Positions 28,101 to 31,879 of a stretch of 64,000 nt of DNA are shown in pieces. The stretch comes from Geosiphon pyriformis uo1 (lineage: Eukaryota; Fungi; Glomeromycota), in the NCBI GenBank assembly GCA_016748015.1, contig JAAOMT010000003.1, positions 66,373 through 130,372 of the forward strand, in the 5' to 3' direction. The stretch's first letter is position 1. Every line of letters starts with the position of its first letter. Both the position numbers and the translations under genes were made by a program. Under the pieces are notes generated by a model. That model ran no database searches. It was not told where the DNA came from and was given only the letters and a program-made list of their open reading frames with translations.

Positions 28101-29849
28101 AGTCGATCTCTTATATATGTTTAAATTTTTGGTACTTTATTTCAATCAAATATATTATCTTGGAGAGTAAAAATTGTGCTTCTGATTCATGTGAAATAAA
28201 AGATTCTTGATATTCTTTTAATGGTAATTAAACTTTGCTTATAGAAATACGAATATTATGGTGGCGAATCTTTGATCTTGAATTTTAGACTGATATAACA
28301 CCAGGTCAGATCCTGCTCTTCGCCCACCAAGTATTTAACAGTATTAGAGTTATGATCTTGTTAAGTTAAAAGATAAATGATTAATCACATGATCCCTATC
28401 TGGTATTGTCTTTTTTCAAAAGTTTTTGTAAAAGTAAAACTTCCAATAACAATGCTTATTATTCCTGGAGTAACGACTTTATATTAAATGTATTAATATC
28501 AGAGAAAAAAATTACATCCCTAAAGTAAATTTATGAAATATTTTTGTGGAATAATGTAGTTTTGTTACGATATGAAGCGAATTCATTTTTTATCAAATAA
28601 GTTTTGTCAATAAAATCATTTAATACAATAAATTCTTAATTATTATCAAAAGAACAATACTCAACAACCAAAAAATACTATTCTCAGATTTCAGGACATA
28701 AAAATACATCCAAAATAATTATATTTTTCTAAAAAACTGCACAAAATTTAAAACTCTTCTTGAATAAACACAATAAAATATGATTCTTTGAACGAGTTTT
28801 CCAAATATTTAGATTAAAATCTAAATTTTAAATTTAAACGATAGATTACACAGAGGATCACAGAATATGTCTTAGATTCTAAATATATTATGATTTTCAG
28901 AGAACAATATTTGCTTCGAAAGTTACATAATATCAATTTTGTTTAAAGTCTCTTGTTTTGATTGAGATTTTTAAAGGTAAGTATCAAATGTTGTAGAATG
29001 AACACAAAATGATGTTCCCAAGAAAATATTATATATGAAATCGGCTAAATTATTGGGAGGAGGATTATTCAAAATAAAATGGAAAAAAAAATAAGGAGTA
29101 CTAAAGTTAAAAAATTAAATTTGCAAAGATTAAAAAGTTTATCATTAGATTGAAAGTAATCATAATTTAAAGTGAATAAAAGGATGATATTTTTCTATAA
29201 TTATTGAATCACAGAAACAATATTTTATTTAATGAAATATTTATACTTTAAGAGTCTTTTGTGTGGAAAATATTTACATTTGGCATTCAAAAATGTGTGA
29301 CTTTTAATACGGAAATAATCCCATTTATTTCTCTTTGTGTTCATAACTTTCTATGGTATCTTACAAATTTTAAACAAATTGTGTATTTTATCCCATTTGG
29401 TTGGGGACAAATGAATCTCCGAAAAGATAAGAAAATTTATCTTTGTAAATACCAACCGAATAGTTTCATTAACTATACAGTGCATCAATTTCCAAAGTTC
29501 CACCTATTTATTATGTCATTTTCATTTGGTGATTGTAAATACACCAAAATTACCTTCAAAAGAAATTTATTGCCGAGAACAATTGTTAATATATAATTAA
29601 TAAAGAACAATACTCAATTTGTATCAAGAATACGATAAAATTTTATTTTATTTCCACCAACTAATTTAAATGTAATTTTTACTATTTTTTGCATAATTTC
29701 TTGAATATAACACTGATAAGCATAATCAATAATTTAGGTAACGCTTTTTACCATTGTCTGTGAACGTACAAGATTTTTTTAAAAGAAATTCCTTAAAAAA
29801 CCTGTTTATTCCATACACAATTAAAATCAGCCGCCTTAATTATAGAAAA

Positions 29850-30051
29850 AACAATGCTTTTAACATAATTTAGGGCATTGTTAGTATACCTTAACAATGC
29901 TTCGGCAAATTTATGGTTAAATTGAACAATAATTTTTAACCTGGGATATTGAAAATTTCTATCAAAATTTAGCTTTTTACCATTTTGATTTAATTGGTAT
30001 TGTTTCCAATTATAGATGTTTATGTGAAGGACCTGATTTTTCACTATAAAA
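29850..30051 (+). promoter_or_regulatory. Promoter of the CaaX micro-ORF: clustered HMG-box (AACAAT) sites and TATA box
   Basis: AACAATGC at 29850-29857 (+), 29875-29882 (-) and 29893-29900 (+); AACAAT at 29925-29930 (+) and 29999-30004 (-). TATAAAA at 30045-30051 is followed by a CT-rich tract and an A-rich 5'UTR. Confidence 0.6.
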
Positions 30052-30158: not shown

Positions 30159-30290
30159 ATGCAACCAACAACCAACAATCAATCCTCATTCAATCCACTC
30201 ACAATCATCTCTCCTGGCAATGGCTCTATTAAAGGACCAACCGGTGACCCAGATGATGGTAGCGGTACTGGCCAATGTTCAATTATGTAA
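30159..30290 (+). CDS. Putative a-factor-like lipopeptide pheromone precursor, 43 aa, C-terminal CaaX (CSIM)
   Basis: ATG 30159 in gaaaaATG context to TAA 30288-30290: MQPTTNNQSSFNPLTIISPGNGSIKGPTGDPDDGSGTGQCSIM*. It is a GC-richer island in AT-rich DNA, with a TATA box 114 nt upstream and AATAAA at 30612. It is below the ORF-track size cut-off. Confidence 0.7.
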   Translation: MQPTTNNQSSFNPLTIISPGNGSIKGPTGDPDDGSGTGQCSIM

Positions 30291-31879
30291 ATTTAAAGAT
30301 TACTCCCATCGAAAATTCTCTTTCTTGACCACCACCACCACCACCACTATCAATTTTTGTCGCCAAATTTGTAACCGAACCAAATTTTATAAAAGTTATC
30401 TTCGTTACCTCTGGACCATACTTTTTTAAGAGATTTAACGATTTGATTCGATTTAGTTAATACCCAGTTTAAACTCTATAAAATAATTATTTAGCCCCTT
30501 TAATGATGAATTACTACGATATTATCTCGTGTAATATTTATAATTTTAATTGTGTATCAATATTATAAAATTGATTTGTTTTTATATAATATAATTAGTT
30601 ATAAAATGTCTAATAAAGTGATTCTAGTAACAAGATCAATTTTTTTTCTCGAAAAAAAATTTTTGGTTCTTTTTTAATCATAAAAAAGAAAAATAATTGA
30701 TCCTTGACTAAACTGAATAGAAGCTTTTACTTAAAATTATTTCTTAAATATTGATTTTGCGAATATAAATGTCTGAAAATTAACTTCAAATTTTTTTGGT
30801 TCAATTAAATTTTCAGTTACAATAATAAAACAATTAACTGGTCTCACACCAGCTTTTTAACAAAAGTTTTCACTTCATTTTGAACAAATATATATCATAT
30901 TGAATAATAATCATTTTTCATGCGTAAAATCGGGTTCATTTTCAGCTTGCGAATTACTAAAATAAAAATCTAAAGTTCTATTCTAATTTCGCCTCAAAAT
31001 ATTTTAATCAACTTTTTTCTCAATTCATCCCGGTAATCCACGAAACAACAAGAAATAATTCAATTGTGTCACAACTATATTTCTCATGATAAATACATTG
31101 AATAATTGTATGGGCTGAAAATCTCGTGAATTAGTTACCCATCAAGGGTAGACTGTATTTTGAAGTTTTTTTATCACTAACCCAGTAAATACTGCATAAA
31201 ATGTGGTTTTAAAAAAGGAAGAAAATCAAAATATGACAAACAGTGCGAATCTGTTTGTATTTAAATGCTGATTATATATAAAGAATTTTTATTATTAAAA
31301 ATCTCATCAACTTTTGCGTGCATTTAAGTATCAAATTTAAGATAATTTCGAAAAATTTATATATTTCAGAAACATCATCAACCATTCTTATCTAACCATG
31401 AAAAGTTTTCGTTTTAATATAAGATAAAATATTTTCTAATTTTATATAAACTAAGTTTAATTATAAAATTTTCGTAACAATTTTAAAACTTGATTAATAA
31501 AAAAAAACTAATATGAAAGGCGACAAAACTACAAGGAATTTTGGAAGACAAGTATAATTTACAAAAATAAGTTTCCTTAAAAGTTTACACATGGTAAAAA
31601 ACAGTGTTTTTTTAGATTTAGCATTCAGCATTTTTTAAAAAAAAGCATATTTTTTGATTGCATTTCCCATTTTATAAGGAAGACATTAATGCAAAATTTA
31701 TTTTCATGGCGAATATATGCCGTTTTTTTTAGAATACTGAGTTGAAAATCCTTTTTTAAAAAATATATATTGAATTTCTTCATGTTACTTGTGCTTTTAA
31801 GTTAGAAACTGGTGGGGCAAAAATATTGAAATTCAACATACATTTTTTTATCATTAAATATTTTACTTTACTTGTACGT

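Follow-up and report, generated by a model that had tools for sequence, protein, structure and literature searches.

Micro-genes ending in a CaaX box, conserved between Geosiphon and Ambispora, as candidate precursors of an a-factor-type lipopeptide signal in Glomeromycota

Does a 43-codon open reading frame (ORF) of Geosiphon pyriformis (Glomeromycota, Archaeosporales), which ends in a Cys-Ser-Ile-Met box and an immediate stop codon, represent a genuine gene, and could its product be a lipidated peptide signal of the a-factor type? The question arose from a sequence-only reading of a 64,000-nucleotide stretch of DNA, hereafter the window (positions 66373-130372 of contig C787, in an assembly of 128 Mb and 792 contigs), which proposed a farnesyl-peptide pheromone precursor at 30159-30290 of the plus strand and took the DNA to come from a Glomeromycota-type genome, correctly so, as protein searches name Geosiphon pyriformis. 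Our own translation of this ORF, which runs from an ATG start to a TAA stop included in the coordinates, agrees letter for letter with the proposed peptide and places the CaaX box at 30276-30287 and the stop codon directly after it, at 30288-30290. Micro-ORFs of the Cxxx-stop type are not rare, with eight ORFs of 20-90 codons presenting a Cys at position -4 in the window. Hence, the motif alone means little, and the case rests on conservation. On that ground the window ORF is beyond chance, given 33 intact paralogues under purifying selection and orthologues in a second genus. The reading favored here, to which we assign a probability of about 0.6, is that these genes form a family of a-factor-type lipopeptide signal precursors, the product of which is a candidate ligand of the single Ste3 receptor encoded in the same genome.

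A six-frame search of the genome returned 38 matches, 33 of which are intact ORFs of 132 nt. The locus had been presented as a single gene; the gene is real, but it is not alone, being one of at least 33 copies. These comprise 29 distinct nucleotide sequences and encode an identical peptide in 24 of the 33 cases, the window copy carrying a Thr15/Ser18 variant that is unique to it within the family. The sequence-only reading had suggested a genome scan for CaaX-stop relatives followed by a dN/dS-type test. Across the 33 copies, the mean pairwise proportion of synonymous differences (pS) is 0.39, versus 0.008-0.019 for non-synonymous differences (pN), yielding a pN/pS ratio of 0.02-0.05. Variable sites are distributed accordingly, with 9, 11 and 33 at codon positions 1, 2 and 3, and non-consensus codons comprise 50 synonymous versus 20 non-synonymous instances, where 23.5% would be expected to be synonymous (binomial P = 3e-17). 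Two divergent copies, L034 and L035 (C704:513199-513327), account for 15 of the 20 non-synonymous variants. When 31 copies are considered, codons 1-21 show 26 synonymous and 6 non-synonymous variants, and codons 22-43 show 20 and none. The final stretch, codons 34-43, presents 11 synonymous variants and no non-synonymous one, and within the CaaX box the codons alternate freely (TGC 28, TGT 5; TCG 15, TCA 14, TCT 4; ATT 16, ATC 16, ATA 1) with no amino acid change. The intact copies harbor no indels and no premature stops. The position of the stop is the same in 33 of 33 copies, 31 of which use TAA and 2 TGA, and the sequences diverge immediately beyond it. The CaaX-stop terminus, a lack of conservation of which in related genomes would, according to the sequence-only reading, have spoken against the proposal, is maintained in all intact paralogues, as it is in Ambispora (see below). 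These are protein-coding genes under strong purifying selection through the CaaX box and the stop, and it is, in our view, close to certain that the family is genuine, codes for protein under selection and terminates in a CaaX box that functions.

The distribution of sequence identity along the aligned loci bears on whether the ORF might have arisen by chance within a repeat or transposable element, its copies resembling each other merely through recent duplication. The family is multicopy, the genome is AT-rich and repeat-rich, and fragments resembling transposable elements are located near some of the copies (e.g. in the tail of the gene model designated P0004), all of which would be compatible with such an origin. 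The ORF, however, coincides with the peak of conservation instead of being part of a uniformly conserved unit. Identity is 0.85-0.93 inside the ORF and 0.55-0.79 in the 120 nt upstream, where the block from -119 to -60 has a mean pairwise identity of 0.73-0.79; it drops about 50 nt past the stop, and lies mostly at 0.2-0.6 beyond approximately 180 bp. Furthermore, orthologues with the same frame and a CaaX-stop terminus exist in a second genus. The age of the copies is evident from a pS of about 0.39, and still the peptide does not vary. Together these results exclude a chance ORF in a young repeat, and we consider this explanation already refuted.

Most copies are organized in tandem arrays, on C729 (889-900 kb and 949-964 kb), C578 (286-315 kb), C551 (34-60 kb), C622 and C657, with a unit spacing of roughly 2-3.5 kb, and no second ORF common to the array units was found. 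At least four pseudogenes, frameshifted, truncated or degenerate, were also identified (C551:39722-39844, C700:140160-140261, C352:322889-322990 and C777:605211-605276). In three of the four, a CSIM or CLIM box followed by a stop is still terminal, the copy on C352 being devoid of a CaaX box. The family evolves by birth and death. A small multicopy family arranged in tandem arrays and encoding a peptide with five prolines and no signal peptide could also correspond to precursors of peptides that are made on the ribosome and modified after translation (RiPPs), such as the amatoxin MSDIN family. An internal core between conserved prolines would then be excised by prolyl oligopeptidase or other enzymes, and the CaaX box would be incidental or would act as an anchoring follower. 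The few amino acid variants observed in the family do cluster at residues 15-18, between Pro13 and Pro19. MSDIN families, however, combine a hypervariable core with conserved flanks, whereas here most peptides are identical throughout and codons 22-43 are invariant at the amino acid level in 31 copies. The most constrained part is precisely the C-terminal half containing the CaaX box, and no ORF for a modifying enzyme is common to the array units. A RiPP-type precursor is consequently a very improbable explanation.

Orthologues outside Geosiphon were sought with two profile searches, one of them covering 1.84 billion proteins, which recovered mis-extended gene models of Ambispora leptoticha and A. 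gerdemannii (Ambisporaceae, Archaeosporales), and the corresponding ORFs were then read in the DNA. Matches to an Acropora EGF-repeat protein and to an Ephydatia repeat protein in the search of 1.84 billion proteins were rejected as low-complexity repeat matches, and the ESM Atlas provided no usable match. Six Ambispora copies were read, five of them in one 18-kb contig of A. leptoticha and one in A. gerdemannii; a second A. gerdemannii locus, indicated by a public model, lies outside these six. The ORFs are mostly 42-43 codons long, with one of 39, and share 56-71% identity with the window copy. Five terminate in CVIM and one in CIIW, and the stop follows the box directly in 6 of 6, as TGA in five copies and TAA in one. 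Differences between A. leptoticha paralogues fall predominantly on third codon positions (15/19, 4/7 and 18/21), and Asn21 is invariant in both genera. The replacement of Ser by Val at the a1 position and the change of stop codon, with the CaaX-stop terminus nonetheless kept, are what selection on a prenylation signal would predict. Synteny, which had also been suggested as a check, is conserved for one copy: the Geosiphon copy at C704:513199-513327 and an A. leptoticha copy (in the region L054:4675-10253) are both located directly upstream of, and on the same strand as, an orthologous gene of about 750 codons. The encoded proteins, which share 30% identity (E = 1e-59), are single-pass membrane proteins without a Pfam family over cut-off, and both public annotations fuse the micro-ORF to this neighbor. 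The shared microsynteny indicates that the family predates the split of Geosiphon and Ambispora. A divergent A. leptoticha paralogue (L054:3469-3588), of 39 residues, starts with MKSASN, lacks the IK of the IKG block and accounts for the CIIW-stop terminus; with Trp unusual as X, it may represent a pheromone of a second type, or else a copy in decay.

The window ORF had been described as unannotated, which is not strictly the case, since a GenBank model, G9A89_023116 (76 aa, 30159-30429), starts at the same ATG. This model posits a 40-nt "intron" at 30259-30298 of the plus strand that removes codons 34-43 together with the stop, and then proceeds in another frame. The stop is likewise overrun by 12 other models in Geosiphon and by six or more in Ambispora, with donors after residue 33, 34, 37 or 42 and unrelated tails of 7 to about 750 residues. 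Some of the Geosiphon models fuse the micro-ORF to neighboring genes, namely a lipase class 3 gene (P0012 and, weakly, P0009) or, by a C-terminal fusion, a gene for a Kelch-repeat protein (P0015). Were these models right, the ORF would be a first exon, splicing would remove its stop, and a CaaX terminus would never arise. The G of the terminal ATG codon and the T of the stop do form a GT donor, the GenBank models, 13 of them in Geosiphon and no fewer than six in Ambispora, agree in passing the stop, and the two orthologous models mentioned above extend into a conserved gene of about 750 codons. The donors vary from model to model, however, the tails are unrelated, and the intron posited in the window spans just 40 nt. 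Moreover, codons 34-43, which some of the models delete, are under purifying selection, and the position of the stop is kept as either TAA or TGA while the next bases diverge. The combination of differing donors and tails with selection on the deleted codons leads us to read the extended public models as artefacts that hide the CaaX-stop, and their being correct strikes us as hardly credible. Annotation pipelines would drop models under about 50 residues, and the discarding of such short products is a likely cause of the survival of extended models only.

If the CaaX box is functional, the first expectation is lipidation. A yeast reporter shows complete farnesylation of both CSIM, the box of prelamin A, and CVIM, that of K-Ras4B, and a-factor with a CSIM box supports yeast mating when Rce1 is present (PMC11152559), as anticipated by the claim that a CaaX box with X = Met is a substrate of farnesyltransferase (FTase). 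The product of the family is, judging from its sequence, very probably prenylated. In the a-factor pathway, CaaX modification is followed by two N-terminal cleavages, the second of which leaves Tyr22 N-terminal, and by non-classical export, and the same architecture is found for M-factor and for the pheromones of U. maydis and C. neoformans (PMC2134810). The Geosiphon precursors, of 42-43 residues, present a polar N-terminus (MQPTTNNQSS...) without a hydrophobic core, in which no signal peptide can be read. An ungapped alignment with S. cerevisiae Mfa1 had been reported to give ten identities for the window copy. The count is correct for the Mfa1 sequence used, the numbering of which agrees with the residue numbers in PMC2134810. 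The Geosiphon consensus matches Mfa1 at 11 of 36 positions without gaps (shuffle P 3.5e-5; Smith-Waterman P ~1e-3), and Ambispora at 6 of 36 (shuffle P 0.07; Smith-Waterman P 0.05, with one gap needed). Since the sequences are very short and the likeness was noticed post hoc, this resemblance, which is weak for Ambispora, is suggestive as a lead to Asn21 as a possible cleavage site and is not to be taken as evidence of homology.

By analogy with Mfa1, where cleavage separates Asn21 from Tyr22, a cut after the invariant Asn21 would release a putative mature peptide spanning codons 22-40 (Gly22 to Cys40; 30222-30278, plus strand). From gene to signal, we infer the following course of events. Once the genes are transcribed, the Cys of the CaaX box would be farnesylated by FTase, the -aaX tripeptide cut off by Rce1 or Ste24, and the new C-terminus methylated by a Ste14-type ICMT. 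The polar N-terminal part would be trimmed, plausibly after Asn21, and the resulting lipopeptide exported via an ABC transporter. It would then be sensed by the single Ste3-type G-protein-coupled receptor, acting as a pheromone in mating or as a self-signal in some other form of hyphal communication, with transcription placed under HMG-box factors.

The genome contains the components that this scheme would call for. The sequence-only reading had held that the absence of a STE3-type receptor or of processing genes would speak against a pheromone; STE3, ICMT/Ste14, Ste24 and prenyltransferases were all found. The STE3 receptor gene (PF02076) is represented by a single intact locus at C642:334886-335808, in two exons (E = 1e-41 and 4e-19), and the match spans positions 1-292, which correspond to the full domain. 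ICMT/Ste14, a Ste24-type CaaX protease N-domain and three prenyltransferase beta-subunit loci are also present. The processing enzymes have housekeeping functions, and their presence is therefore necessary but does not discriminate between explanations. A search for STE2 (PF02116) gave no match in the genome, and its positive control was silent too.

A TATA box, as had been noted from the sequence, is present at 30045-30050 of the plus strand (TATAAA, -114 from the ATG), and 31 of the 33 copies contain a single TATAAA between -140 and -90. The start codon has the good Kozak context ascribed to it, with an A at -3 (AAAAATGC) and A-rich surroundings, and the AATAAA reported downstream, a candidate polyadenylation signal, is located at 30612-30617 (plus strand), with AATAAA occurring 283-343 nt past the stop in most copies. 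A leader described as CT-rich is only weakly so, its pyrimidine fraction being 0.49 over -110 to -40. Instances of ACAAWG (mostly AACAATG, the HMG/Sox-type core) average 3.6 per copy in the region from -500 to -1, and are densest at -450 to -200, as compared to 0.2-0.7 in four 500-bp control flanks and 0.62 per 500 bp in the window overall, which amounts to a 5- to 17-fold enrichment. In 18 of the 33 copies, two half-sites are arranged as an inverted pair, CATTGTT-N10-11-AACAATG, in which the half-sites are invariant and the spacer varies. The pair of the window copy, with a 10-nt spacer, lies at 29876-29899, and two more ACAATG/CATTGT sites of the family-wide ACAAWG enrichment lie at 29752-29757 (minus strand) and 29851-29856 (plus strand). 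Genome-wide, 36 instances of the palindrome were counted, as opposed to 5 of a reversed control pattern; 19 of those 36 are located upstream of family copies. In Ambispora the enrichment is milder: of five upstream regions that are complete, four contain 3-4 sites. The 1 kb upstream of STE3 itself contains only three ACAAWG sites, and the palindrome is missing from it. Pheromone genes of S. pombe, U. maydis and Cryptococcus are under the control of HMG-box factors (Ste11, Prf1 and Mat2, respectively), and the MATA-HMG families of Glomeromycota are greatly expanded.

A separate class of palindromes was encountered in the same search. Fourteen other matches belong to a dispersed repeat that is 2.7 kb or more in length, contains tandem sub-repeats and has 80-85% identity between copies; they take the form CATTGTT-N11-AACAATG, the spacer of which includes a third CATTG/CAATG (e.g. 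C136:155600-155624 and C787:461943-461967). This repeat is probably a transposable element carrying HMG-type sites and is separate from the micro-gene family.

Several observations weigh against an a-factor-type ligand. Essentially one peptide is encoded by all copies, in a genome with one receptor; conservation between genera extends over the full 43 residues, the supposedly discarded N-terminal half included; for a peptide of the a-factor type, the putative mature part is of unusual length, Gly/Asp-rich and hydrophilic; and 33 copies are far above the number in known systems. The STE3 contig, C642, harbors no family copy, and the interval reaching from about 20 kb upstream of STE3 to 17 kb downstream of it was found to contain neither a family member nor a convincing CaaX micro-ORF, so that there is no linkage of the pheromone/receptor (P/R) locus type. 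Ten family members gave no Pfam match at E <= 10, pheromone families included. Protein profile searches revealed no relatives in other orders of Glomeromycota, and searches of metagenomes with peptide patterns and with back-translated IKGPTGDP(D/N)DG revealed none there. As micro-ORFs are rarely annotated, absence outside Geosiphon and Ambispora constitutes weak negative evidence. The co-occurrence of one peptide and one receptor in the same genome means that the system is not obviously mating-type-specific, and would mean that expression is regulated or depends on mating type, as in ascomycetes, or else that there is autocrine self-signaling, for instance in hyphal fusion or recognition.

Some of these same observations would be accommodated by a small prenylated peptide that is kept inside the cell, as a membrane-anchored regulator or a structural micro-protein, and is no ligand of Ste3. 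Such a role would fit the conservation of the whole length between genera, the hydrophilic, Gly/Asp-rich composition, the lack of linkage to STE3 and the occurrence of one invariant peptide without mating-type-specific variation. On the other hand, the C-terminal half is more constrained, as would be expected if it carried the mature part, and the HMG-type promoter sites fit the regulation of pheromone genes by factors such as S. pombe Ste11 and U. maydis Prf1. To our knowledge, moreover, the only fungal CaaX proteins of about 40 residues are pheromone precursors, which counts against an intracellular peptide, as does the presence of a Ste3 receptor that would otherwise be an orphan (PMC3834313). 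An intracellular role thus appears unlikely, and we favor an a-factor-type lipopeptide precursor. That the product is secreted and acts as a Ste3 ligand seems more probable than not, and a role specifically in mating is less probable.

Around the micro-gene, from 18000 to 46000, the window is very AT-rich (GC 14-26%) and contains no ORF of 130 residues or more. Eight larger ORFs elsewhere in the window gave no Pfam match, and no tRNA genes were found in the window.

Peptide pheromones have been looked for in this phylum before. Arbuscular mycorrhizal fungi (AMF) were reported by Halary (2013) to possess STE3 and STE6, with a STE6 orthologue described for Rhizophagus, but peptide pheromone coding genes were not found (PMC3834313), in agreement with the statement of the sequence-only reading that no peptide pheromone had been described in Glomeromycota. 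Mateus et al. saw no up-regulated pheromone genes (PMC7490403), and Le Marquer et al. recovered only Kex2-processed, alpha-like repeat proteins in Rhizophagus, the pheromones of early-diverging fungi outside Dikarya and Mucorales being chemically largely unknown (PMC6339444). In the literature covered, which does not extend to the Geosiphon genome paper, no report of CaaX pheromone precursors in Glomeromycota was found. Whether the family described here is the long-sought peptide pheromone of Glomeromycota, and forms with Ste3 a functional a-factor/Ste3 lipopeptide pair outside Dikarya, is a proposition we advance tentatively and rate slightly below an even chance. If true, the a-factor/Ste3 system would be older than the split of Dikarya and Mucoromycota/Glomeromycota, the MQP...N-x-IKG...DP likeness to yeast Mfa1 might reflect descent, and supposedly asexual relatives of AMF would retain a signal for recognizing mates or self that is actively selected, has been massively amplified and is controlled by HMG-box factors. 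Sex in AMF and their relatives is a long-standing question, in which meiosis genes, a putative mating-type (MAT) locus, STE3, STE6 and the mitogen-activated protein kinase cascade have been kept. The family provides a concrete candidate ligand, which can be synthesized and tested on the native Ste3 and might be used as an indicator that a mating or recognition response is under way. Given that Glomeromycota annotations splice around stops and hide such genes, the same approach may reveal equivalents in Rhizophagus and other AMF.

Compared with known systems, the family shares its CSIM box with human prelamin A, for which processing by FTase, ZMPSTE24/RCE1 and ICMT is proven (PMC11152559); prelamin A is, however, a large nuclear protein, and the motif is the sole relation. 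The S. cerevisiae precursors Mfa1 and Mfa2, which are matured by Ram1/2, Ste24/Rce1, Ste14 and Axl1, leave the cell through Ste6 and are detected by Ste3, come closer in layout, with about 36-43 residues that lack a signal peptide, begin with a polar extension and terminate in CaaX-stop, and with several genes encoding the same peptide; Ste3, ICMT, Ste24 and FTase genes are available in Geosiphon as well, and the ungapped match to Mfa1 covers MQP, Thr5, Asn21, IKG and DP. The Geosiphon peptides differ from the yeast ones in that the Cys is located 7 residues further from the IKG..DP block, the box is CSIM (or CVIM) in place of CVIA, the part presumed to be the mature peptide is hydrophilic and of greater length, and 33 copies are present instead of 2. 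Among other ascomycetes, N. crassa mfa-1, Magnaporthe MF1-1 and S. pombe mfm1-3 encode very short CaaX precursors, several of them ending in CVIM or CVVM, so that these hybrid, a-type and M-factor precursors resemble those of Geosiphon both in size and in having Met as X. S. pombe M-factor further combines several genes for one identical peptide with HMG-box control through the Ste11 TR-box. The filamentous ascomycete and S. pombe systems also possess a second, alpha-type pheromone with Ste2, and their copy number is 1-3. The P/R pheromones of basidiomycetes (U. maydis mfa1/2, Cryptococcus MFalpha/MFa and Agaricomycete Phb) are likewise CaaX precursors, of about 35-60 residues, that act on Ste3-type receptors only; they are often multicopy, their mature peptides can be Gly/Ser-rich and hydrophilic, and their expression is driven by HMG factors (Prf1, Mat2). 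They are linked to their receptor and allelic by mating type, whereas in Geosiphon the genes are unlinked and one peptide is dominant. Receptor linkage and mating-type alleles, however, are a trait of the basidiomycete P/R systems only, and are not needed for a system of the ascomycete type.

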